Shown: one piece after another, positions 30,601 to 53,859 of the stretch
Numbering within the stretch: position 1 is the stretch's first letter
Layout of the letters: each line of letters starts with the position of its first letter
Source: Zootoca vivipara
Taxonomy: Eukaryota
Direction of reading: 5' to 3'
DNA: 64,000 nucleotides
Assembly (NCBI RefSeq): GCF_963506605.1
Contig: NC_083280.1
Location: 51,708,001-51,772,000 of the forward strand
Made by a program: the position numbers and the translations under genes
Notes under the pieces: generated by a model
What the model saw: the letters and a program-made list of their open reading frames with translations, nothing else
What the model was told of the DNA's origin: nothing
Databases searched by the model: none

Positions 30601-31984
30601 CAGCCATTTCACTCATTAACACAGGGGGTTAATTCAGGAACCCCTGTTGTGTCCTAGGTTACCATATCATGTCTTATATGGACATTGTAGCGTTTGAGGG
30701 CCACTTAAGCCCTGAATAGTTTGCAAGCATAGATGCAACTGAAACTGGCCCAGAAAACAAACTAAGGGATTTTTATTGTGAATGATTTAATCGAGGGTGC
30801 TATTAGCAGCCTTCTCATTGAACTATCCTGTCCAGAAAAGCCCATTATAATTTGGCATTCACTGGTGGAGGTAGAGGGGGATCCCTGGAATGGAAAGCTG
30901 CTGCTGTGCTAGTATTCAAACTGGGGTGAATCCACCAGCCCACATTTCCCACTTTTCAGAAGCTGGTCATAAACATAAACGGCCTTGGATATTTAAATAA
31001 AGCCATTATGAGTATTCTCTATTTGTTAGCTGGTCATCAACTTTAGATGCAATTAAAGTGAAATTACCTCTGATAGACACATGGTTATGAACTTTCAGCC
31101 ATAACTCCCTTGGTATTGCATTATTGTTTCAAATTAAAATGGTGTTTCTCTTTGCTTAAAACCTCACATTATTTTTTTAAAGCCATGGTGTGCCTAGAGA
31201 GTGATGAAATGCAAAACACACAGCCTTGCAGGGCCTTGTAAAAAGCACACAAAGACACTTGTTCAGCACAGTAAAGATAAGAATTATGAATTTATGGTTT
31301 CACAATATTGCTTACAGCAAAGTAGTGGAAGCTGGGACTTAGGCTTTTCTAGAAAGGATAATTAGAAACAATAAATAGTCACAGGACAATATTGCCCTAA
31401 TCAGTTAATCATCCCTACCCAAAGTGATAAAATGACCGTTATTAATGCTTTTTTTTTTGGCATAAAGATTACTTTGGATAGAATGGCATCCTGTTTATCC
31501 ACTGTTAATGTTCAGCTATTGCTTAAATAACTGTGTACTATTAAACTGAAAGGCTTAAATGTAGTCGGGTTCATACTTTTGGAAATCCCCACTTTGGAAG
31601 ATGTGGGGATGTCAGTGGGCAACACTTGGATAGAAGTGACATTTATGATAACTGGTGTACAAGGGCGTACCCACCATGGGGCAAGTTAGGGCAGCTGCCC
31701 TACTCTAGAAGCCAGCTGGCAGCTGCCCCTCTCTAGAAGCAAAAGGACGCAGCGAGGGAGAGGAGGGGAGAGAGCGCAACACCCTCCTGCTGGAGCTCGC
31801 CCGGGCTGCCTCCCCACAGCCTTCACTCGTTCAGCTCATTCTGCTGCTGCTCTTACTAGAGCAAACAAGGAGGGGGGAATGGAGAACCAGAATTGGAAGA
31901 GCTGGGGTGTGGATTAAAACACTGTACGTAAAACACCACACTCACTCTGATGTTCCTCCCAGGGATCGCGGTGGGAGGGAGGGG

Positions 31985-31987
<3 letters not shown>

Positions 31988-32068
<81 letters not shown>
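31988..32068. repeat. (GA)n microsatellite, about 40 units
   Basis: Directly visible. Confidence 0.98.
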
Positions 32069-32070
<2 letters not shown>

Positions 32071-32533
32071 TTGAAGCTGGCTGCTGAAGGATTGAAGTCT
32101 CTCTCTCGCGCGCGTGCGCGTAAAGAGAGGAGGCTGGACAGGGCGAGCCTTCCAAAGCTCCTGTGCCAGTATTTAAGATACAATTTGTTTCCTTGTTTCA
32201 GGTAGCAAATGGTCGGCACCACAGCTTTTACTCTTGTCCTTGGGGAGGGGGGATCTTTATCAGTTTAATGAAACCTCCAGCGATAATGAGGTGTGAAAGG
32301 AGTTCCGTTTTAACTGGGTGGTTTTGCATAAGGAGGCTTGGAAGGCATGGGAATGCAATGGTGTTATATCTTTCCCAATTGTCCTCCCTCCTTTGTGTCT
32401 TTTATCATCCAAGCTGTTTGGGCAGCCACTGTGTGATGTGATCTTAAAAGATGTGTGTTAGAAAGGGTGGGCATAGATGTCTCAGTTTTCTCTTTCAGCC
32501 TTAAAGGGCCAGCACCCCTTTATTGCTATAAAG

Positions 32534-32836
32534 CAGGCATGTCCAACAGGTAGATCATGATCTACTAATAGATCACTGGACGTCTGTGGTAGATCACTGG
32601 CTCCCCCCAAAGAAGCTCAGCAACTTTGGCTCCCCTAAAAAAAGCTCTACATCTTTGCCCTGAAGCCCCCAAAACAGGGCTTTCCTTCCTAAATAAAGCT
32701 AAACTTTGACCTGAACCCGCTAAAACATGGATGGCTTTCCTTCCTAAAAAAAAGCTCAACAACCTCAACCTGAACCCCCAAAAGGGGGTAGATCAATCAC
32801 TGCCAGTTTTTAACTCTTGGAAGTTGGCCACCCCTG
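32534..32836. mobile_element. hAT (Charlie-like) MITE nested in the 3.5-kb element
   Basis: TIRs caggcatgtccaac / gttggccacccctg, perfect 8-bp TSD ctataaag (32526-32533, 32837-32844), gtagatca subterminal repeats and internal tandem units. Confidence 0.85.
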
Positions 32837-32927
32837 CTATAAAGAGTCTGCATGTAGCTTCATTGGAAGCGATGGTATGTTGGCATTGACAACAGATATT
32901 TTTTATGTTGTTATGTATTACGGTTTT

Positions 32928-34027
32928 TAGTTTCTTTGCTGTCTCACCAATAGAAAAACCTGGGTGGTCACTGTTAGGGAATTTTATGGGGGGGGGCACC
33001 CAAACGAGGCTTCATTTGGGAATCAAGATTGGCACAAATGCCCTCAAGGGGACCCCATTTGATCCTACAACACCACTCTAGTATCGCACCAACACGAACC
33101 CCCTCAAGATCAAGCCCTGTGTAATAAAGGCTCCCTTTCCTACCCTTTCTCTGTTGCCTGAGACTCTATGTAACCATATTTCTTTATGAATGAATACAGT
33201 GTATCTTTATTTCTAAATGAAACCCCCTTTTGCTACTCTGGCCAAGGGCTCTCAGGGATGCAGGGAACAGCCATAATCCTTTAAGCAAGAGGTCAGGTAG
33301 CCAGGGTGGTGCTCCTCTGCATATCCATAATCCATTCAGGTACCATCTCCTGCCATTCCCAACCCTCCAAAGCCAGAGGCAATACTCACACCTGGACCCA
33401 TTGTCCCCCCCCCCCGCCAGGTACTCAAGGATCCCCTCCCAGATACTTACTGGTACTTGCTTAACAATGTTCTGGGACATCGTGCATTGTTACCGTATGT
33501 TAATCCTGTTTACCTCCTGTTTACCTGTATGCTAATGCCCCTTGCCCCTTCCCCTTTTCTGACGTTTTACCCTGTCACAAGTGATGTATGTATGATGCTT
33601 TCGATGTACATTATGGGATGGTGGTGGGAACTTTTAAAAGTTCTTGCAGCCCTGTTCATGGTGTTCAGTCTGGCATTGAACCTGCTGCGCAGTAATAAAC
33701 CTTGCTGTTTGCTCCGGATCGTGGCTGGACTCCTTCCTTTTATACTCTGCAACGACCACAGGCCCTTGCCTGATGAGCTGGGTGGCTGAGCATTCTCGCA
33801 CCCAGAATTTTGCCCTAACAGTCGCTTTTTATCTTTGGGCGATGCTCAGAACAAAACAGGAAGAAAGCAGGTGGTGGACTTTTGGGGGAATTGGAGTCCT
33901 TTTACTTCTTCTTCTCTCCTTTAGGAGGGATATAACTTTCCATCTCCTTCTCATAATGAACTTTGCCACTGTTTGCCATGTCTTCAAACTTGCCTATTTG
34001 TTTTGCTGACATTGTCCACCATTCAGA
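32928..34027 (-). pseudogene. HMGB2: HMGB2-like processed pseudogene fragment (end of box A, linker, start of box B), split by a solo LTR
   Basis: 34027-33821 translates [68 protein letters not shown]. After removing the LTR and one TSD the frame resumes (32966-32928) as HPGFSIGETAKKL. SEHRPKIKS…SIG.TAKKL fits HMGB2 better than HMGB1. One in-frame stop, no introns. Confidence 0.92.
32972..33820 (+). mobile_element. Solo LTR (849 bp, Gypsy/ERV-type)
   Basis: TG…CA termini with 8-bp IR tgttaggg/ccctaaca, 5-bp TSD gtcac/gtcgc, AATAAA about 125 nt before the 3' end; cleanly interrupts the HMGB2 reading frame. Confidence 0.9.
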
Positions 34028-34557
34028 CAATTGGGTTGCATTTCGCAGGGCAGAAGAGTCCGGACCTTGGTGTATTCAGCTTGCTAGGCTTACAGGAATC
34101 CGGACGTATGAAAGGGGTCGGTCTTGCTGTGGGCAGGATTCCTGCATTACCGGGGGGGGGTTGGACTAGATGACCCTGGGGGTCCCTTTCAGGCCAGCTC
34201 TACAGGATTTCTGTGAGGGGTTCAAGTGAAAGGAGCGGCTGTAGATAGTTTCTGTGCTTCAGGCTGCTATCCTATACAGGCTTACCTAGGCATAGATTGA
34301 TTTCTTAAGATGGTTGTGTGAAAATTATTATGGACAAAGTATAATCATGTAGCGCCTGTATTGTAGGCTCAGCTTATAAATATGTGTAAATAAGCAATAC
34401 ATCATAAAGACACCACTATCTCCACTGTGGAAATATGAACCCTGGGTAAGTGCCTGGGCCCCTGGAATCTCACTGTTGTGGATATTGGGGTGGCATGGAA
34501 CAATATTAAAACTTGCAGTTTGCCCCCCCCTCCTCCATTCCCTCAATACTTTTCATA

Positions 34558-34665
34558 TAATCATAGAATCACAGTACTCCAGGTGAGGTCTGACCAGGGC
34601 AGAATACAGTGGTACTATTACTTCCCTTGATCTAGATGCTATACTCCTATTGATGCAGCCCAGAA
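34558..34665 (-). mobile_element. CR1 fragment (tail joined to an internal ORF2 piece)
   Basis: atcatagaatca + cagtactccaggtgaggtctgaccagggcagaata…ctcctattgatgcagccca. Confidence 0.7.
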
Positions 34666-35421
34666 TGGGATAAGGCAAAAGATGGGATAAGGCAAAAGAA
34701 GGCAAACTTTAATTTATTTCTGTACAGCAGGCTTTGCTAAGCTGATTCCCCTCCGTGTGCTTTGGACTACAACTCCCATCTGCCTCTGGCAGCGCAGTTG
34801 TGGTCCAAAGCACGTGGAAGGTGCCAGGCTGTCAAAGGATGCTGTTCATTCATAATATGAGTGCCCATGTGCGTAGTATGGGATATGCCTTGTCCTTGCT
34901 CTTGCGTAACCACAGCTGGGCCTCAGCAGGCTCATTGAGAATGTCCCTTTTTATAGCTGCTTGTCCTGACCTTTCTCTGATCCTCCTTATTATTTCCCTG
35001 GATTTCCTCCCTTTTGGTGTTATTAGACTGGAGTCAGTTTCACCTGGGCTCTGTAGCCCCACCCACGTCCCCACTTTGTGGCACCTCCCCTCCTGTGCCT
35101 TGGCCCCGCCCCTTGCCCCTCCCCTCCCATGCCTTGGGCCCACCCCTTGCCCCCCCCCCTAGTTTTGATCCTGGGTACGCCCCTGCTGGTGTATCCAAGT
35201 GGAGGGATGTACTATACTGTAACATAGCTTGCCTATTTGCCTGCCTTCTGCCTGGTGTTCTTGGATCCAATCCTATCTTACTTGTGCCCTGGTGCCATCT
35301 TGCTTGGTGCATTCAGAAAACTAAACTAGCATACAGATAAGACTACATTAGAACCTTTTTTCCTTTCTGTTGGTAGGGAGTTTGACATGGGACAGTGTGC
35401 AAGCATGCTGCCTGTATTCTA

Positions 35422-35800
35422 ATCATAGAGATGGAAAGGACCCCAACGGTCAGCCTCCCCTGTTGATGCAGGCAATCTACTGCTATAGCATCCCAGATAG
35501 GTGGCAATCAGATAGGTGGCATCCCAGATAGGTGGAAAGTTAAGAAGCATCCATCATCTCTTGAAGCAGTACAATCTACTGTTGAGCAGCTTGTGTCACC
35601 AGGAAGTTCTTCCTTCTAAGTCCTCCTCCATTTGCACCTGTTAGTTCAAATCTTAACCTCTGGAAGCACAGGGAACAAATTTGCTCCATCAACTACCGGT
35701 ATGTGACAGTATCATCTCTTCTCACCTCCTGGTGAAACATACCCAAACTCCTTAATTCTTTCCTCCTCTGAATTGGCCTCCAGACCCCTCACCTCCTTTG
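35422..35800 (-). mobile_element. Old CR1 3' fragment
   Basis: atcatagagatggaaaggaccc…caggaagttcttcc…aacatacccaaactcctt; decayed version of 45665-46064. Confidence 0.65.
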
Positions 35801-36742
35801 ATCCCCTCTTATATCTGCACTCAGAAATCAGTTATGTTGAATCTTTGAGAAAATCCGCAAAATATACTTAGAGCAAAGGACTTTGCTCAAAGAATCCTGG
35901 GAACTAAGTTTTGTTAAGGATGCTAGGAAATTGGAGCTCTGTGAGGGGGAAACTACAATTCCCAGGATTCTTTGGGGGGTGTCATCTGCTTTAAATGTGC
36001 ATTGGATGTGCTAAATGTATGCCCTTCCTTAGTTGCCAAAGAGGTTTTTGACTGAAAGTGTTAATACTGTTTCATACTGAACTCTGCCAACATGAGACGG
36101 TCTGTAGAATGATAATAAACTTTATAGATTTTTCCTGCTTCTTCCAAAAGCTTCTGAATCGCCTATATAGCTGGGATAATGAGACTAGCAGTATTTGGCT
36201 TTTGCTATCCCAGGCACAAAGGAAACACATCCAAAATCTCTGAACTATGACACTTGGCATCCTTTAAAGGAAGGAATGCAGGCAGCATACAGATTCTCAG
36301 TTCTATGCAGCATCTCTCTGTATCAGAACTATATACTGTATAGGAATAAGTTTTAAGGACCTGCCAAATTACCCAACTCATTTTGCCTGATGAAATGTGG
36401 AGTTGGCTCCATCCACATTGCATTGTAACCTGTGGTTGTGTTCACATGAATTGGGTCAAAAAATGATTTCCCCTTCTACAACTAATCAGGCATCACCAGC
36501 AACCCCTTCTTCAGTGTGACTTGCTTTACTTTGCTTAGATCACAGCTATCAGTTCCTCAGACCTTTGAAAACAAGCTGAGCTGAGATTCCAGACAGCATT
36601 GGTGCTTTTCAGAGGACCAGTGAATGTGTAGGGCAGCGGTCAGATTCACGTCAGTAGTTCCTGCTTCCCACCTGGTTCTCTGAACAGAGCCCATGTATAT
36701 ACAACTTGTGCACATGTAGGTGTTCTCTCTCTCCCCCCCCCC

Positions 36743-43940: not shown

Positions 43941-44455
43941 TAATAATAATAATATTAATAATACTAATAATAATAATTACATAATTGGCTGGGTTTCCCC
44001 AGCCACTCTGGGCGGCTTCCAACAGAGGAATAAAATAATCGATTAAAGATTAAAAGCCTCCTCCCTAAACAGGGCTGCCTTCAGACGTCTTCTAAAAATC
44101 TGGTAGCTGTTTTTCTCTTTGACATCTGATGGGAGGGCGTTCCACAGGGCGGGCGCCACTACCGAGAAGGCCCTCTGCCTGGTTCCCTGCAACTTGGCTT
44201 CTCGCAACGAGGGAACCACCAGAAGGCCCCCGGTGCTGGATCTCAGTGTCCAGGCAGAACGATGAGGGTCGAGACGCTCCTTCAGGTATACTGGACCAAG
44301 GCCATTTAGGGCTTTAAAGGTCAGCACCAACACTTTGAATTGTGCTTGGAAACATACTGGGAGCCAATGTAGATCTTTCAAGACCGGTGTTATGTGGTCT
44401 CGGTGGCCGCTCCCAGTCACCAGTCTAGCTGCCGCATTCTGGATTAGTTGTAGTT
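43941..44455 (-). mobile_element. L2-clade LINE 3' fragment (ORF2 C-terminus, 3' UTR, (TTA)n tail) inserted into a short MITE
   Basis: ORF LQLIQNAAARLVTG…DHITPVLKDLHWLPV…RAFSVVAPALWNALP is a typical L2 ORF2 end; flanks 43870-43935 and 44458-44536 rejoin to match the repeat at 63360-63510. Confidence 0.9.
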
Positions 44456-45664
44456 GTACTCCCTTCAAAGAGCTACAATTCTCAGAGTTCCCTGGGAAGG
44501 ATTGGTGGTTAAACCACTCTGGAAATTGTAGCTCTCACACTTGGAAGGAAACACGACCTTAGAGGGGAAATGGCTTCTCTAACAAACAGAATCTACCAGA
44601 TCAGCTCTGCTATCTGTTCTGGAAGTCCATCCCCCCTCAAGGCGAAATAAAAGTTTGGCTATGTGGGCTGTTTTGTTTCCTCTGCTTTTCTACCAGTATT
44701 TGTAGGTGCTGAAGACACAGTATTATGATTATAAGGGAGATCTTGCCCATCATAAAGAAGGTTGATTAGACTGGCACTCTGGTGATTATAAGAAATCCAA
44801 TCATACTTAAATACACAATACCAATTCTCACCAAGTCATAGAAAATCCCAACTATGAGATTAGGACACATCAACAGAGGGAGCGAATATGAAAGTATTAA
44901 AGAAAGGCAAGACTGGGTAAAAAAAATAATCTCATTCTGACTGGCCTCAAACTTGGCTGCTGTATCTAGTCAGTAATTAACTCCTAGTGGCTGCATGACA
45001 AAATTCTGCTGTTGGCACCTGATGGAGGAAAAGAGACAGAAGTTGCAGCTGCTGTAGTGAAATGGTCAGAGAAACCTTTAGGGAGGAAAACCTTGGCGGA
45101 ACAGGAGCAGTGCTTAGAACAGGCAGAACTGAATAAGAAGGATAAAAGAGGCGGCTTTTAAGAAAGTCCAGATGCTCAAGGCCTATTCCAAGAGAAACAA
45201 ATGAAACAAAGTGGAGAAATGTGGATTGAATTTCTTGCTAAACCTCAAGATTCCTAACTAATAAAGCAGGGGCATGAATTAAATATCTGATTGCCTAATA
45301 GCTACCTTTGCTTGTAAGTTCTAAAGTACGAGCTAGCCAAAGAGTAAAAAAGTGAGCTGTAAAAGTATAGGATTGTATCTGAGTCCTACTTTGAGTAGAC
45401 CCATTGAATAGGCTTAAGTTAATCATGTCCATTAGCTTCAGTAGGTTTACTCTGTGTAGCGTTTGATACAACTCATCAAATTTTAAGTTACTGCATCAGG
45501 TCCCTTTCTACCTAAAGATGCTCATTCACAGTGAAGATGCACAAACAAATGACTCTTCTGTTCAACCAACTGTTGACAACCACTGAAAATATCTGAGAGT
45601 GGATAGTGCAGATGATGTCTTAATGTGACTTAATGAGGTGATAAATATATTTAGAAAATATATT

Positions 45665-46064
45665 TCATAGAACCATAAAATCATAGAGTTGGAAGAGACC
45701 ACAGGGGCCATCCAGTTCAACCCCCTGCCAAGCAGGAAACACCATCAAAGCATTCTTGACATATGCCTGTCAAGCCTCTGCTTAAAGACCTCCAAGGAAG
45801 GAGACTCCACCACACTCCTTGGGAGCAAATTCCACTGCCGAACAGCTCTTACTGTCAGGAAGTTCTTCCTAATGTTTAGGTGGAATCTTCTTTCTTGTCG
45901 TTTGAATCCATTGCTCCATGTCTGCTTCTCTGGAGCAGCAGAAAACAACCTTTCTCCCTCCTCTATATGACATCCTTTTATATATTTGAACATGGCTATC
46001 ATATCACCCTTTAATCTTCTCTTCTCCAGGCTAAACATACCCAGCTCCTTAAGCCGTTCCTCAT
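45665..46064 (-). mobile_element. CR1 LINE 3' fragment (ORF2 C-terminus)
   Basis: YEERLKELGMFSLEKRRLKGDMIAMFKYIKG…RKNFLTVRAVRQWNLLPRSVVESPSLEVFKQRLD, a classic CR1 ORF2 end, plus tail. Confidence 0.95.
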
Positions 46065-47515
46065 ATTTGAAAGCTATAAGATCACTCTCTCCACCCAGCA
46101 CCCATTTTGATCTATTTGACCTACCACATTTACTGCCTTTACCCCATTATCTTATTCTTATATGTTAACAATGCACATGCTATTCACCCCATATCTAAGT
46201 TACTTAGAAGCAGAGTATAGGGCATGGTAAGCCTTGTGCGATTCCTATCAAAAGCCAACTCACACATATATACCCAAATACTATTATAGGTCAGTGAATG
46301 AAAATATGTAGGAGACCTATGAGTACAGGGTGTTGGTGGAGAGAAAAATGGAAAGGAACAGAGTATACTATACAAACATTGGACAAATGTCTTCAGAAGT
46401 ACGGGTTAATTGTTTAATGAAAGAGATGAATATAATTCACAAATAATCAATGTGGTGCCCTCCAGATGTTGTGGACAATTACCACCACCACCCTGATCAC
46501 TGGCCATGCTAGCTGGGGGTGATGACAGTTGTAGTTCAAAATGCCAGAAGGGCACTACACAGGCTTTTGATCAGAGAGCCTTTAAATTAAGATGTTGATG
46601 GACTTGATCAAATTTCTGTTCCATAAAAAGAAAAAGAATGTGGAGAAGGTGGGGGGGGGAGGGAATGCCAAGCTGACTTTTGAGAGGGAAAATGCAACAA
46701 GAAGGAACAAAAGTAAAATGACCTTCCAAAGTCAGAGAGACTCTGAATGGCCGCTAATTGAAATGTCATAGGAGGAAGTGAGCTGGTAAGCGAAAGCAAA
46801 TATTTAAAAGATGAGAAACCCTTCACAGTCAACTGGATTAATTTTCTGCCAAGTTCATCACAAGCAAATCTATTTGAGGTGATGTTGTGGAAAGTGGTGG
46901 GTTAGCATACATTGTCTGGAATCTGAGGAATGCATAATGCAGGAGGGCAGATAATGACTGCTGGGATCTCTTGGCCCCCAGGTATATGAAGAGCTGGCTA
47001 GTTAAAGGTTGTTTGCCATAATATTTTATTCAGAGCATTTAGAAGTAAATAAGTAAGAGCTGGAAAGACAGAGCAATTTTCAGGAGAAAAATGAGCATGT
47101 TGAGTTTTCCAGCAAACCTGAACTGTTTGCATTCAGTCAGCAATTAGAGGGAAATGCCAAGCCATAATATTGGAGCCATTTAAGTAGGAATTAGTAAGGT
47201 GCTCTGATCCAGCTATCTGATGCTGGAGCTTCAACATCTATTATAGTAGAGGGAGTCAACCCCCATGTGCACTGCTTTGCACAGATGGATCAATTTCCTC
47301 CTTTGACATAACTGGCGACCTCCCTCTATATATGTGCAAGCATGCCTGGTACTCTAAACTGGTGCAAAGAAGGACAGTTTTACTGACTCACTCTTGACTA
47401 TTAATTTTAAGAGGAAATGTATCCCAGAGTATCAAGTTTGTTAGCAATATTTTTGGGGGTCCAGGGTGGGGGTGCGTTACAGACCCACCTGCTCGTCTTC
47501 TAACTAGCTAACCAA

Positions 47516-47955
47516 CATAGCTGCCAAGTACCCTGTTTTCCCTGGGAAAGCCCCGTTTTTACTTACCCTTTCCCGGCGGTCCCCCATATCACTTCATCTC
47601 CCGTTTTTCCCCGTTATTTTCTCCTGCCGGCAGCTATTTTTTCCCTTCTGATTCGCCCTTCTATGGGCACCAAAGATGGCCGCCGCCGGCTTCGAAAGTC
47701 ATGTCTACGCATGTCTGGAAGTGTGTAGACGCGACTTCCGGTATCAGTGGCGGCTATTTTTGGTGCCCATAGATGGGCAGAGCGACACCGGAAGTTGCGT
47801 CTACGCATTTCCGGACATGCGTAGACGCGACTTTTGAACCCGCCGGTGGCCATTTTTGGTGCCCATAGAAGGGCAAAGTGACACCGGAAGTTGTAACTTC
47901 CGGTGTCACGCAGCTGCCGGTCCAGGATTCTGCAGTCCGGGACTTGGAAAGTAAG
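47516..47955. mobile_element. hAT-type MITE, CATAGCTGCCAAGT family, CpG-rich
   Basis: Left TIR catagctgccaagt, decayed right TIR acttggaaagtaag, TSD (g)ctaaccaa on both sides; internal palindromic repeats. Confidence 0.85.
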
Positions 47956-49425
47956 GCTAACCAAGCAAGCTATTCATACTCCTCCATTATGACTCTTATT
48001 CCCCTCACAAAACCTTTCACCACACACTAGTTGAGGGTGGACACTGGTGCTATTCTGACTTTTCGCTCATCCACCAACTATGAACAACTTCTTACAAAAT
48101 CAATTTTCTTTATCATGTTCCATTCATCTTTCCTTTCTCAAATCCTTATCCTGAATTGTGGTTGTTGAATTCAATATTCAAGTTTGGGAAAATAGCTTCT
48201 CATAGGATTCGAATTGTTCCCAAGCATCATCCTGGCCTCATTTGAGAAACATTAATTAGGGGAAAGAAAAATCACAATTTGCAAGGCATAAGATGGAATT
48301 CATTTGTAAATTGGATGCTGGTTCTCCTTTTCTTCTCACAGCTTGTGTAGTTTTCTATACATTTCTCTAATACTTCACGATCTTGGAGCAGGTTCATGGA
48401 GCGTGCCTTAAATTGTTAATTTGTTTCCCAAAATGATGGCCCTCATAAACTTTAATGTTTTACAGAACTTATGTAATTATAAATACCTGCTTGGAGCTGC
48501 AGCGCCCAGAAAGCATCACAAAATGCATGTTTTTATCCAATTATGCATCTGTACTTATTTCCCTTGTTTAGAATGTCTGAAGCACCTCTTGCAGCTAAAT
48601 ATATGAATTATAGTGCAATCCTGCCTGCTTTTGTCTACTTAGAAGTAAGTCCCGTTGAGTTCAATGATAAGTGGGCAGGGGTCCCTAGCCTTATTGGAGC
48701 AAGCAGTGCATTTGCAAAACTGAGAAACTATCATGCAGAAATGCTGATGGGTATACTGAGGCTGCATACATACTATACAATTAAAGCCCCAGTCCCGGGA
48801 CCTGTAATTTACCCTTCACAGAGCTACAATTCCCAGGACCCTTAACAAACTACACTTCCTATCATTCATTGGGAGAAGAGGAAATGTGCTTTAAATGTAC
48901 AGTGTGTATGCAGTTTAAAATAACAGTACTTTCTTACAATGAAAGTTAAAACAAAACATTTAAAATGGTTTTGGCTTCCCTGTCCTTAATATCAGCTTAG
49001 ACCAATACAGGTCGTCATCACCATGCAAAGGTGCTTGCATTCTTTAACTGCACCATGCATTTTCTATAGCTAACAGACATGCACAGTGAGAACTTATGAA
49101 CACAAAATCAAATGTTATTTTGTTTGCTGGGCACTCAATACATGCAATTAGAGTAGATGGAAGCAGGCAAAAAAATAAAAAAGGAACAATTTGCTTACTT
49201 CAGTGCTGCAGATAATGACTATGTTGACAAGGTCACCTTGCTATATTGACATTGTCCATGCTGTAGTCAACTAATAATAATAAAAAAACTCTGCATTTAT
49301 CCAGAGATGTGGGGAAATAAATTTCAGTCAATGTCTAGGCCATTTATTTAGAATAAGTAATTCACTGTATTGTCTTGTAGAATTTACAATACAGTGAATT
49401 ACTTATTCTAAATAAATGGCCTAGA

Positions 49426-50668
49426 AAATTCTACAAGGCAGGCTTAGGCAGTATGTGGACCGAGAACTCCCAGAAGTGCAAGCTGGATTTCGAAAGGGCA
49501 GAGGAACCAGAGACCAAATAGCAAACATGCGCTGGATTATGGAGAAAGCTAGAGAGTTCCAGAAAAACGTCTACTTCTGCTTCATTGACTATGCAAAAGC
49601 CTTTGACTGTGTCGACCACAGCAAACTATGGCAAGTTCTTAAAGAAATGGGAGTGCCTGATCACCTCATCTGTCTCCTGAGAAATCTCTATGTGGGACAA
49701 GAAGCTACAGTTAGAACTGGATATGGAACAACTGATTGGTTCAAAATTGGGAAAGGAGTACGACAAGGTTGTATATTGTCTCCCTGCTTATTTAACTTAT
49801 ATGCAGAATTCATCATGCGAAAGGCTGGACTAGATGAATCCCAAGCCGGAATTAAGATTGCCGGAAGAAATATCAACAACCTCAGATATGCAGATGACAC
49901 AACCTTGATGGCAGAAAGCGAGGAGGAATTAAAGAACCTTTTAATGAGGGTGAAAGAGGAGAGCGCAAAATATGGTCTGAAGCTCAACATCAAAAAAACC
50001 AAGATCATGGCCACCGGTCCCATCACCTCCTGGCAAATAGAAGGGGAAGAAATGGAGGCAGTGAGAGATTTTACTTTCTTGGGCTCCTTGATCACTGCAG
50101 ATGGTGACAGCAGTCACGAAATTAAAAGACGCCTGCTTCTTGGGAGAAAAGCAATGACAAACCTAGACAGCATCTTAAAAAGCAGAGACATCACCTTGCC
50201 GACAAAGGTCCGTATAGTTAAAGCTATGGTTTTCCCAGTAGTGATGTATGGAAGTGAGAGCTGGACCATCAAGAAGGCTGATCGCCGAAGAATTGATGCT
50301 TTTGAATTATGGTGCTGGAGGAGACTCTTGAGAGTCCCATGGACTGCTAGAAGATCAAACCTATCCATTCTTAAGGAAATCAGCCCTGAGTGCTCCCTGG
50401 AAGGACAGATCGTGAAGCTGAGGCTCCAATACTTTGGCCACCTCATGAGAAGAGAAGAATCCTTGGAAAAGACCCTGATGTTGGGAAAGATGGAGGGCAC
50501 TAGGAGAAGGGGACGACAGAGGACAAGATGGTTGGACAGTGTTCTCGAAGCTACGAACATGAGTTTGACCAAACTGCGGGAGGCAGTGGAAGACAGGAGT
50601 GCCTGGCGTGCTATGGTCCATGGGGTCACGAAGAGTCGGACACGACTAAACGACTAAACAACAACAAA
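49426..50668 (+). mobile_element. BovB (RTE-clade) LINE, 5'-truncated and young
   Basis: Uninterrupted RT ORF, (CAA)n tail, 14-bp TSD aattcactgtattg (49359-49372, 50669-50682). Confidence 0.97.
49455..50657 (+). CDS. BovB reverse transcriptase, C-terminal 400 aa (no endonuclease domain)
   Basis: QAGFRKGRGTRDQI, FIDYAKAFDCV, GVRQGCILSPCLFN, LRYADD motifs; C-terminus VHGVTKSRTRLND typical of BovB. Confidence 0.95.
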   Translation: MDRELPEVQAGFRKGRGTRDQIANMRWIMEKAREFQKNVYFCFIDYAKAFDCVDHSKLWQVLKEMGVPDHLICLLRNLYVGQEATVRTGYGTTDWFKIGKGVRQGCILSPCLFNLYAEFIMRKAGLDESQAGIKIAGRNINNLRYADDTTLMAESEEELKNLLMRVKEESAKYGLKLNIKKTKIMATGPITSWQIEGEEMEAVRDFTFLGSLITADGDSSHEIKRRLLLGRKAMTNLDSILKSRDITLPTKVRIVKAMVFPVVMYGSESWTIKKADRRRIDAFELWCWRRLLRVPWTARRSNLSILKEISPECSLEGQIVKLRLQYFGHLMRREESLEKTLMLGKMEGTRRRGRQRTRWLDSVLEATNMSLTKLREAVEDRSAWRAMVHGVTKSRTRLND

Positions 50669-51593: not shown

Positions 51594-52713
51594 CCCACCC
51601 ATCTGCTATAGAATTGTCTTTTAAAAATATTTAATACATCTGGAAATTCAAGCACAGCTTGATATGCCATGCAGTTCTTGGAAACATGACAAACTAAATG
51701 GAATATAATGAATTCATTTGTCTTGTGTAGCTGTCTCCCACTTTTAATAACATCAAAAGCTAATCATTGTTGATAATGTAGCCACTACTCCTTTACTTTA
51801 AGTGCCACCAAGCCACCAGATTCAGAATAAAGACAGTCCTTAGGACAAGTGCTGCCTATCTGATGACATCTGAAGGCTTCAGGAATCCCTTTTAGACACT
51901 AAACAACATCCTCCTGATCTTTCATAGAGAGTCAGTCTCAGTGAATGAAAATCAAAATGACTTGAATCATGTACAAGGGCAATATAGCAAATAAAATCCT
52001 TTAAACCATGCAAGGCTCTGATCTTTCAAACCTTTCATGGCAGCAGTCCCATGAGCTGGAAGCAAATGACTACTGTTAGGTTTTTGTTTTTGTTTTTGAA
52101 AAGAAACTGGATACTTTGCCTGCAACTCTTAGTGCTTTACAATTCAAACTATGGTATCATTCTGCAGTAAACTGTCTAGGGTCTACTGAAATGATCTTAA
52201 TCCTAAATGTGTTAATGTGACAGTGTCACATATTGGCTTCTGTGGTCACAGATTAACAGTGTAATCCTATACATATCTATGCAGAAGTAAATCCCATTGT
52301 GTTCAGTGGGGATTAATCCTATGTAAGTAGATATAGGATTGCTGCCTTAGTCACTTTGTGCAAGGCAAATAGAAGCAGAACTCTCTGCCAATCAGTTACA
52401 GATGACAACTCTTGGTCATTGTAAATAGCTAACAGCTAACATATATATCTGCCTCACTGGGTTGCACTAAAATAGTTGTCTCTGTCATAGCAGAATCCCA
52501 CTTAGAATGGTAGTAGGGTGAGTCATCTCAGTTCTCTCACTAATTCATACTCACTGTGGCCCCTTTCTACTGATTTCTGGATCATGCTATAGTTTTTCCA
52601 CTACACGTTTGAAGAAAATGGATGCTGCCTCCACACTATCACCAATTTACCCTTGTTGCAGTAGAACTGAGATGGATTGCTCTTCAGATGTTGCACTCCC
52701 TCCCATTCCCAGC

Positions 52714-53047
52714 CATAGGTGCCAAGTTCCGGATTGAAAAATCCAGGATCAGCAGTGCCATGACATTGGAAGTCACTTCTATGCACTTCCGGACATGCGT
52801 AGAAGCGACTTCTGGCGCTGCAGACATTTTGGAAATGGGCACAGTGGCATTGGAAGTCGCTTCTACGCATGTCCGGAAGTGCATAGAAGCGACTTCCGGT
52901 GCCGCTGCGGCACCAGAAGAACATGGCCGCCGGCAGGAGCTCCGTAATCCAGGGGAATATGGGGTATTTTGCCATTTGGGACACCTGCGAGAAACGGTAA
53001 GAAAATATGGGGGTTTCCCGGGGAAAACGGGGTACTTGGCAGCTATG
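52714..53047. mobile_element. hAT-type MITE, CATAGCTGCCAAGT family, nested in an older palindromic MITE
   Basis: TIRs cataggtgccaagt / acttggcagctatg, TSD ttcccagc/gtcccagc; internal repeats homologous (inverted) to 47516-47955. Confidence 0.88.
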
Positions 53048-53859
53048 GTCCCAGCCATCATGGTCAATGATCAGGATGAGGGGAATTGTAGTCCAGCAAT
53101 ATCAGGTGAGACACAGGTTCCCCATAACTACACTAGATTTAGTTCAGATGTCCTAACACAGTCCATATGGAACATTACCACTGGGTGCCAAATTAAACAC
53201 ACTGGTAGCTACCACTTCCTGGCAGCAAGGCACATAAATGTGGCAGGTAAAAAAATGATGGTCTTCCATACTCACATATATTGTCATAGGAAAATGGCAC
53301 CGTGCATAAGACTAAGGTCTTATTTCCTTTACATGTGCATCTCTAATGATGCTTCATGTGGAGGTCCAGAAATGGATGTGATTTAGGCAGTGATGCAGTA
53401 TGGGACTTGAAGGGCCAGTGCATCTATCTGGTTAAAAAGTGATTACAGCAGCACATTCTAGTGTGAGGTTATTTTTGTGGCACAAGGACTTCTTAATTGG
53501 AGGATAAATCAGTTGCCACATTGTTTTACACACTTAGTATATCCAATCAGCTGATTGGAAATTCCATTGCCTCTGCAGGAATACCTCAGCTCAAAGACTG
53601 TACTAGTTACTACATCAGATATACTGAGCACGTGAAATCAGCTATTTGGAAGCTCCATATTCTGCAATCCAGAATGGCACGTAGAAGGTCACGCAACACC
53701 CACACCTCTGTTTGTGTGGAAGAAAATGGAGCAATACTTTCTAGTCATCTGCTGTGCTTGTGGTTTCCTGTATTTGGGCAAGAAACCAAAGTTTTATACT
53801 GTACCTCTTTCCCCAGAAGCAAATATAGGCGGATAATAGTGTTTCTTTAGAATAATTAA

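Follow-up and report, generated by a model that had tools for sequence, protein, structure and literature searches.

We analysed a 64-kb window of the Zootoca vivipara genome (contig NC_083280.1, 51,708,001-51,772,000; all positions below are those of the window, 1 to 64,000), in which a 3526-bp unit at 31660-35185 has the structure of a DNA transposon. Between its termini, the unit holds a fragment of a spliced HMGB2 coding sequence, a solo long terminal repeat (LTR), a nested miniature inverted-repeat transposable element (MITE), fragments of CR1 elements, and several further pieces of host DNA. We interpret the unit as a Pack-hAT-type element, a non-autonomous DNA transposon of hAT type that carries host cargo from multiple sources, and assign this interpretation a probability of about 0.75.

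Boundaries of the unit and empty sites in related organisms

The unit is flanked by a perfect 8-bp target-site duplication (TSD), CTGGTGTA, with the left copy at 31652-31659 and the right copy at 35186-35193. Its outermost sequences are terminal inverted repeats (TIRs) of 14 nt, CAAGGGCGTACCCA at 31660-31673 on the plus strand and CAGGGGCGTACCCA at 35172-35185 on the minus strand, which match at 13 of 14 positions. The termini are of the form CARGGGCGTACCC, and the similarity between the two ends, although weaker beyond the TIRs, extends for ~45 nt. In a scripted scan, an 8/8 TSD abutting a 14-nt inverted repeat with at least 13/14 matches was found once in the window and in none of 30 shuffles. 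A search of the 64 kb with the TIR pattern returned only these two TIRs, even with two mismatches allowed. The hAT signature consists of an 8-bp TSD and a terminal YARNG motif (Novick et al., PMC3014272); the ends of the unit read CAAGG and CAGGG (CARGG) and thus conform to this motif.

The sequence that belongs to the transposon itself is short. The left terminal region (31660-31751, plus strand) spans 92 bp and consists of the TIR and two subterminal direct repeats (31690-31712 and 31718-31740). The right terminal region (35016-35185, minus strand) spans ~170 bp, with an approximate inner limit, and contains a 34-bp tandem duplication (35084-35158) in addition to the TIR. The inner limit of the left end was placed at 31751 because homology to the adjacent cargo begins at 31752/31753 in all three related organisms analysed (see below). 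The cargo between the two termini amounts to ~3.26 kb.

No transposase is encoded within the unit: the longest open reading frame (ORF) is 135 amino acids (aa) long, and no Pfam domain was detected in the ten ORFs tested. The 135-aa ORF, which spans the right part of the cargo and the right terminus, had no match in a protein homologue search, and Rfam returned zero matches in 31000-36000. Elsewhere in the window, there is no further match to the TIR, no transposase associated with such a TIR, and no further copy of any internal part of the unit, except for the (GA)n tract.

Sequence data from two kinds of sources were mapped to positions 30900-35900 at 80% likeness, namely, one raw-read whole-genome shotgun run of the same species (~1.5 Gb, ~1x) and Logan contigs from three relatives, designated B, C and D. 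The orthologous site is empty in B, C and D, each of which has only one copy of CTGGTGTA and lacks the internal DNA altogether. A contig of C runs straight from 31651 to 35186 (joint at record positions 794 and 793), and the same direct joint is present in a contig of D (1248|1249); in a contig of B, 31642 is joined to 35186, with 5 nt between. None of the three organisms contains a cargo-free element at this site. The flanks of B, C and D are ~96-97% identical to those in the window (3-4% diverged). The whole unit, cargo included, was inserted at CTGGTGTA after the split from B, C and D. An earlier note on this DNA, made from the sequence alone, had described a transposase-free unit of 3526 bp bounded by TIRs and a perfect 8-bp TSD, and had pointed to orthologous loci with a single CTGGTGTA as a check; the description was borne out, and all three relatives provide such a locus.

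Copy number and common ancestry of the cargo

In the species of the window, the flanks of the unit are covered at a depth of 0-1.6 per strand, and the depth jumps from ~1 to hundreds at the TIRs, within ~100 bp (depths of the cargo and termini are given with both strands summed). The bin with the left terminus, which includes 75 terminal bases, has a depth of 360, corresponding to ~800 over those bases after correction. Inward of it, the depth is 71 at 31735-31901, 42-67 at 32069-32402, 70 in the HMGB bin and ~150 at 34741-35074 (~110-150 across the right cargo). It then rises from ~390 at 35061 to ~1030 at 35150, within the right terminus, and drops to under 1 beyond 35242. Further out in the right flank, 35409-35742 has 2-4 times the single-copy depth in the same species and a raised depth in the relatives; this segment includes a 16-bp tandem repeat (35488-35535) and is probably a low-copy repeat.

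The reads that cover the cargo share derived letters with the window copy. At a dozen sites in 31784-31919 and eight more in 33878-33971, the letter of the window is the one found in essentially every read (45-77 per site), and every contig of B, C and D differs from it. Letters private to the window copy are few: positions 31825 and 34699 differ from all reads, the latter being A in the window and C in 108 of 108 reads of the same species. At 33929, 33948 and 33957, the window letter is found in ~30% of the reads, which points to a subfamily. These observations suggest that the cargo belongs to an amplified family with ~40-150 copies in this species. Because the cargo is multicopy and its copies share derived letters, it arrived with the element and was not built up in place. 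The proposal of the earlier note that the family moves its cargo, as opposed to inserts having accumulated in situ, is therefore upheld by the depth, which is ~40-150 times that of the flanks, and by the shared derived substitutions.

The same data bear on a 'transposition-independent' origin of the kind described for Pack-TIRs, that is, TIR elements with interiors derived from host genes. Under this scenario, a break in a resident TIR element would have been repaired with ectopic sequence at this single locus, so that the composite would be unique, with the separate source repeats accounting for the read depth. Nearly all animal Pack-TIRs are single-copy and were formed in this way (Tan et al. 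2021, PMC8277862), and, among the joints listed, no junction reads tie the cargo to TIRs in other copies. Nevertheless, we consider such gap filling unlikely at this locus. The segments 31752-31969 and 32414-32533, which are single-copy in the relatives, are covered at 40-75x here, with the derived letters of the window copy; the HMGB piece, together with its LTR, is covered at ~70x; the climb in depth, from ~1 to hundreds, coincides with the TIRs; and the orthologous sites of the relatives are without a cargo-free element.

Composition and origin of the cargo

The cargo is a patchwork. At least three of its pieces occur as single copies in the relatives, and it also includes two CR1 fragments and a nested hAT MITE. 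The leftmost segment, 31752-31969, is represented by one contig each in B, C and D, at approximately single-copy depth and with 88-90% identity, compared with ~70x in the species of the window. Contigs of B and D at approximately single-copy depth similarly match 34700/34724-35015. These single-copy homologues are embedded in 0.8-3.9-kb contigs with no other similarity to the window, which indicates a host origin of the cargo. Thus, host sequence that is not derived from transposable elements (TEs) is present between the TIRs, in the form of both HMGB2 coding sequence and single-copy pieces.

The HMGB2-derived fragment is located on the minus strand and comprises ~330 bp of coding sequence, collinear from ~codon 13 to ~codon 118. 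The main part (33821-34110), from ~codon 13 to KIKSD, spans the exon 2/3 and exon 3/4 junctions, whereas a third piece, HPGFSIGETAKKL, at 32928-32966, lies within exon 4 and is 3'-truncated at ~32928. Here and below, the exon/intron positions of the HMGB gene (the exon 2/3 and 3/4 junctions, and an exon 3 start near 34014) are those that we take to be general for this gene. The fragment was searched as three separate stop-free pieces, not as a joined reading. The piece at 33905-34075 (minus strand) corresponds to the linker and the final part of HMG box A (Pfam HMG_box_2, E 3e-5; HMGB1 in PDB, E 3.5e-14); the best match of the piece at 33818-33901 (minus strand), the start of box B, is the HMGB2 chain 1j3d, residues 3-29 (E 1.5e-10); and the stretch 32837-32975 bears SDHPGFSIGETAKKL, equivalent to residues 28-44 of 1j3d and collinear with the preceding piece. 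In the PDB alignments, the paralogue-informative residues, H and S in SEHRPKIKS and T in GDTAKKL, favour HMGB2 over HMGB1.

The coding sequence runs without an intron across 33870/33873, the position of a joint in contigs of B and C that probably marks the exon 3/4 intron in the real gene. Near the start of exon 3, one contig of D stops at 34014, and contigs of B and C stop at 33991-33993. The reading frame is interrupted by two stops, one at 33902-33904 and the other near 34076-34078, and 3 bp have been lost where exons 2 and 3 meet. The fragment has neither a poly(A) tail nor a TSD of its own: it breaks off inside exon 4 on the 3' side (~32928) and at a CR1 remnant on the 5' side (~34110-34130), so that only a fragment of a retrocopy is present. 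These features suggest that the HMGB2 piece is dead, with nothing pointing to a function. The earlier note was accurate with respect to the truncation at both ends, the lack of a poly(A) tail and TSD, and the decay, but gave a length of ~250 bp, short of the ~330 bp with two stops that we find. Spliced HMGB contigs of B and D were considered as orthologues of a donor retrocopy, and this was rejected as unsupported: their identity to the window is 85-87%, against 89% for the exon of the real gene, and they share none of the derived letters of the family.

The two parts of the HMGB2 fragment are separated by a solo LTR of 849 bp, TGTTAGGG...CCCTAACA (32972-33820), which the earlier note had counted among 'old repeat-like pieces'. 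The LTR has TG...CA ends with short inverted termini and belongs to a multicopy family; its 5-bp TSD, within the 4-6-bp range of such elements, reads GTCAC (32967-32971) and GTCGC (33821-33825), a 4/5 match. Once the LTR and one copy of the TSD are removed, the HMGB reading frame is continuous, and the corresponding LTR-less joint, 32966 to 33821, is present in contigs of B, C and D. Among the joints listed, only one read of the window's species skips the LTR, which is the expectation from the real HMGB2 exon alone at 1x; the LTR therefore predates the amplification. The composition of the cargo, LTR included, was already in place before the family amplified. The solo LTR itself is covered at 250-330x in the window's species, and no counterpart to its first 600 bp is present at 80% likeness in B, C and D, the flanks of which are 3-4% diverged. 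Together with the ~250-330 copies estimated from depth, this is suggestive of a young, lineage-specific family of LTRs or endogenous retroviruses.

To the left of the HMGB2 fragment, the cargo comprises three pieces and the nested MITE. The first piece (31752-32068) is GC-rich (58% GC) and ends in (AG)40 at 31988-32068. The second (32069-32413) is covered at 42-67x in the window's species and has next to nothing at 80% likeness in B, C and D. The third (32414-32533) is matched in B and C by contigs at approximately single-copy depth, within 2-4 kb of otherwise unrelated sequence. The hAT-type MITE at 32534-32836 has TIRs CAGGCATGTCCAAC and CAGGGGTGGCCAAC, which match at 11 of 14 positions, and a perfect 8-bp TSD of its own, CTATAAAG, at 32526-32533 and 32837-32844; its depth is ~650-1800x in the window's species, and the depth sums are very high in all relatives. 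An 83-bp spacer (32845-32927) separates the MITE from the 3' break of the HMGB fragment, the HMGB similarity ending at AKKL.

On the other side, the 5' break of the HMGB fragment adjoins a CR1 3'-end remnant (~34130-34218, plus strand; ~1550x), followed by old interspersed-repeat pieces (34219-34569), the depth of which is in the hundreds in all four organisms, and by an internal fragment of a CR1-type ORF2 (34570-34666, minus strand; ~6800x), contained in an ORF at 34553-34705. Among the loose ends listed, the family consensus of the CR1 3' piece continues into a ATTCTATG tail; the ORF2 fragment is cut on both sides relative to its family, which runs on as VQFWAPQFKK; and the high-copy families behind 34156-34188 and 34570-34666 extend both ways with sequence that is absent from the window. 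Given that the family consensus of the CR1 pieces runs on where the window stops, these are fragments and not whole insertions. The right cargo piece (34667-35015) includes a perfect 17-bp tandem duplication (34665-34699) and a palindrome with 26-nt arms (34749-34821). The duplication (ATGGGATAAGGCAAAAG, 2.1 units) is located exactly at the end of the CR1 ORF2 fragment. The (GA)n tract, the nested MITE and the CR1 remnants were all named in the earlier note, and now have defined positions.

With the cargo in view, two further alternatives to the preferred reading can be weighed. The first is accumulation in place, whereby a short, cargo-free MITE would have been inserted at this locus and the LTR, the nested MITE, CR1, the HMGB retrocopy and other DNA would have been added one by one. 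Nested insertions are common, and some of the nesting here is real, given that the nested MITE and the solo LTR have their own TSDs. However, six or more insertions and an HMGB decay of 11-15% do not fit flanks that are only 3-4% diverged and sites that are empty in the relatives. Moreover, the cargo is multicopy, with shared derived letters and with the LTR in essentially all copies of the HMGB cargo, and neither the CR1 pieces nor the HMGB piece, all of them internal fragments, has a tail or a TSD. Stepwise accumulation thus appears highly improbable.

The second alternative is a macrotransposon, in which two copies of a MITE would flank a 3-kb segment of host DNA and their outer ends would be used jointly. 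Alternative use of ends is documented for Ac/Ds (PMC1592236), and such a structure would account for a large, ordinary genomic cargo rich in old TE fragments, in line with the argument of Novick et al. on hobo_AC. Against it, the unit contains no inner copies of the TIRs, with two mismatches allowed, and the terminal regions span only 92 and ~170 bp; in the relatives, the cargo pieces are found in separate contigs with unrelated surroundings, which points to several donors rather than one contiguous segment. The version with two whole MITEs around host DNA was rejected because the inner TIRs are absent, and we give the macrotransposon in general a low probability.

Outside the unit, several other ORFs in the window were noted. 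A 400-aa ORF at 49455-50657 looks by eye like a reverse transcriptase, and minus-strand ORFs of 141 and 118 aa, at 44043-44468 and 45745-46101, respectively, look by eye like the C-terminal part of ORF2 of a long interspersed element. ORFs on both strands at 47614-47964 and 52601-53386 contain a recurring peptide motif, ...YACPEMRR.NF.C..., which suggests a DNA repeat at two places ~5 kb apart.

A Pack-hAT scenario and its relation to known systems

The preferred reading, a Pack-hAT-type element with cargo from multiple sources, can be cast as the following sequence of events. An HMGB2 retrocopy would have formed first, and a non-autonomous hAT element would then have acquired it along with other short pieces. 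The acquisition probably occurred by template switching during repair synthesis, yielding 'filler DNA', and not by means of two whole elements around a host segment. The MITE and the LTR could have been inserted either before or after the capture, but ahead of the burst. A hAT transposase encoded elsewhere would recognise the TIRs and the subterminal repeats and move the unit by cut-and-paste, with copies being gained either when the donor site is repaired from the sister chromatid or when the element transposes while the DNA is being replicated. The loaded element would have been amplified in this manner in trans, with one copy landing at this locus and the HMGB2 piece travelling, presumably, as non-functional baggage. 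The earlier note had envisaged the capture of host DNA that contained an older HMGB2 retrocopy; the mobility of the cargo is now apparent, and it is plausible that the retrocopy was captured together with its surroundings.

Several points weigh against this reading. Compared with the loose hAT TSD consensus nTnnnnAn, CTGGTGTA has the expected T at position 2 but T instead of A at position 7, although the consensus is a weak preference and this is a single site. TSDs of 8 bp are also made by P elements and by some rarer superfamilies. Neither an autonomous element nor a hAT transposase was found, so that the assignment to the hAT superfamily is a structural one. The copy numbers come from one low-coverage run mapped at 80% likeness. 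No other copy was read over its full length, and the link between TIRs and cargo in the other copies is drawn from the step in depth, not from junction reads. The depth is uneven among the parts of the cargo (20-150; 40-70 on the left versus ~150 on the right), so that not every copy has the whole cargo; there are probably subfamilies that carry only part of it. A donor locus with a longer HMGB2 pseudogene was not found, only homologues being seen in the relatives. Finally, the cargo pieces at 31752-31969, 32414-32533 and 34724-35015 are 10-12% diverged from their homologues in the relatives, whereas the flanks (30900-31651 and 35186-35900) are only 3-4% diverged.

This gap in divergence may mean that the capture is far older than the burst, the loaded element having persisted as a long-lived, low-copy master. 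Alternatively, the homologues in the relatives may be paralogues and not the true donors, mobile copies that are methylated may decay more quickly, or another lineage may have been the source of the loaded element. A more far-reaching, and tentative, possibility is that this lineage hosts an unusually productive hAT capture-and-amplify system, in which cargo from multiple loci (GC-rich 5' regions, a retrocopy and TE fragments) would have been assembled and then spread to tens to hundreds of copies within the 3-4% divergence of these species; the divergence of the cargo would then reflect a long-lived low-copy master or horizontal transfer from another lizard lineage. Such a system, if real, would far exceed the handful of low-copy multicopy Pack-TIRs known across 100 animal genomes.

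With exact empty sites and tens of copies of a decayed cargo, the locus provides a clear-cut example, in a vertebrate, of host DNA being moved by a DNA transposon. The species may serve as a natural system for how cut-and-paste elements gather and spread gene pieces and promoter-like DNA. In genome annotation, this stretch and its relatives are best treated as a single repeat family for masking, without recording the HMGB piece as an HMGB2 pseudogene locus. With processed HMGB pseudogenes, this piece shares an intronless coding copy that runs over two exon junctions and is decayed, with stops; unlike them, it is truncated at both ends, lacks a poly(A) tail and TSD, and is a passenger of a DNA transposon, not a product of retroposition at this site.

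The closest parallel among known lizard elements is hobo_AC of Anolis carolinensis, with its 15 non-autonomous families (hobo-N1 to N15), which are 1.3-3.4 kb long, are present in 16-689 copies and have only their termini in common (PMC3014272). Like the unit described here, these are lizard hAT elements with 8-bp TSDs, YARNG ends and no transposase, and their interiors consist of incorporated genomic DNA, in their case including older CR1, SINE (short interspersed element), Penelope and DNA-transposon fragments. The two differ in the TIR, which is TAGGCTTGMTC in hobo_AC and CARGGGCGTACCCA here, and in the lizard lineage, as well as in the spliced HMGB2 fragment of the present unit, gene fragments being unmentioned in the main text of PMC3014272.

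Among animals in general, Tan et al. 2021 (PMC8277862) identified 370 Pack-TIRs in 100 genomes, 208 of them hAT; only four of the 370 were multicopy, three in frog and one in alligator, and Pack-hAT-N8_XT of Xenopus tropicalis carries the 5' untranslated region of CAPSL. The resemblance to the present unit lies in the predominance of hAT TIR elements with interiors derived from host genes and in the absence of the multicopy cases from orthologous loci of outgroups. However, the cargo of animal Pack-TIRs is usually one short piece, and the frog case described has 3 copies, in contrast to 3.3 kb from several sources in ~40-150 copies, by depth, in the lizard. In this respect, the unit resembles the Pack-MULEs and Pack-CACTA elements, which are also non-autonomous TIR elements that amplify fragments of several host loci, including GC-rich 5' gene regions, but which belong to the Mutator or CACTA superfamily, have TSDs of 9-10 or 3 bp, and are found in the plant kingdom. 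Thus, hAT systems that shuffle gene fragments are not new, either for lizards (Novick 2010, PMC3014272) or for animals (Tan 2021, PMC8277862); what sets the present element apart is its size, its cargo from multiple sources, the retrocopy among its passengers and the clean empty sites in its relatives.

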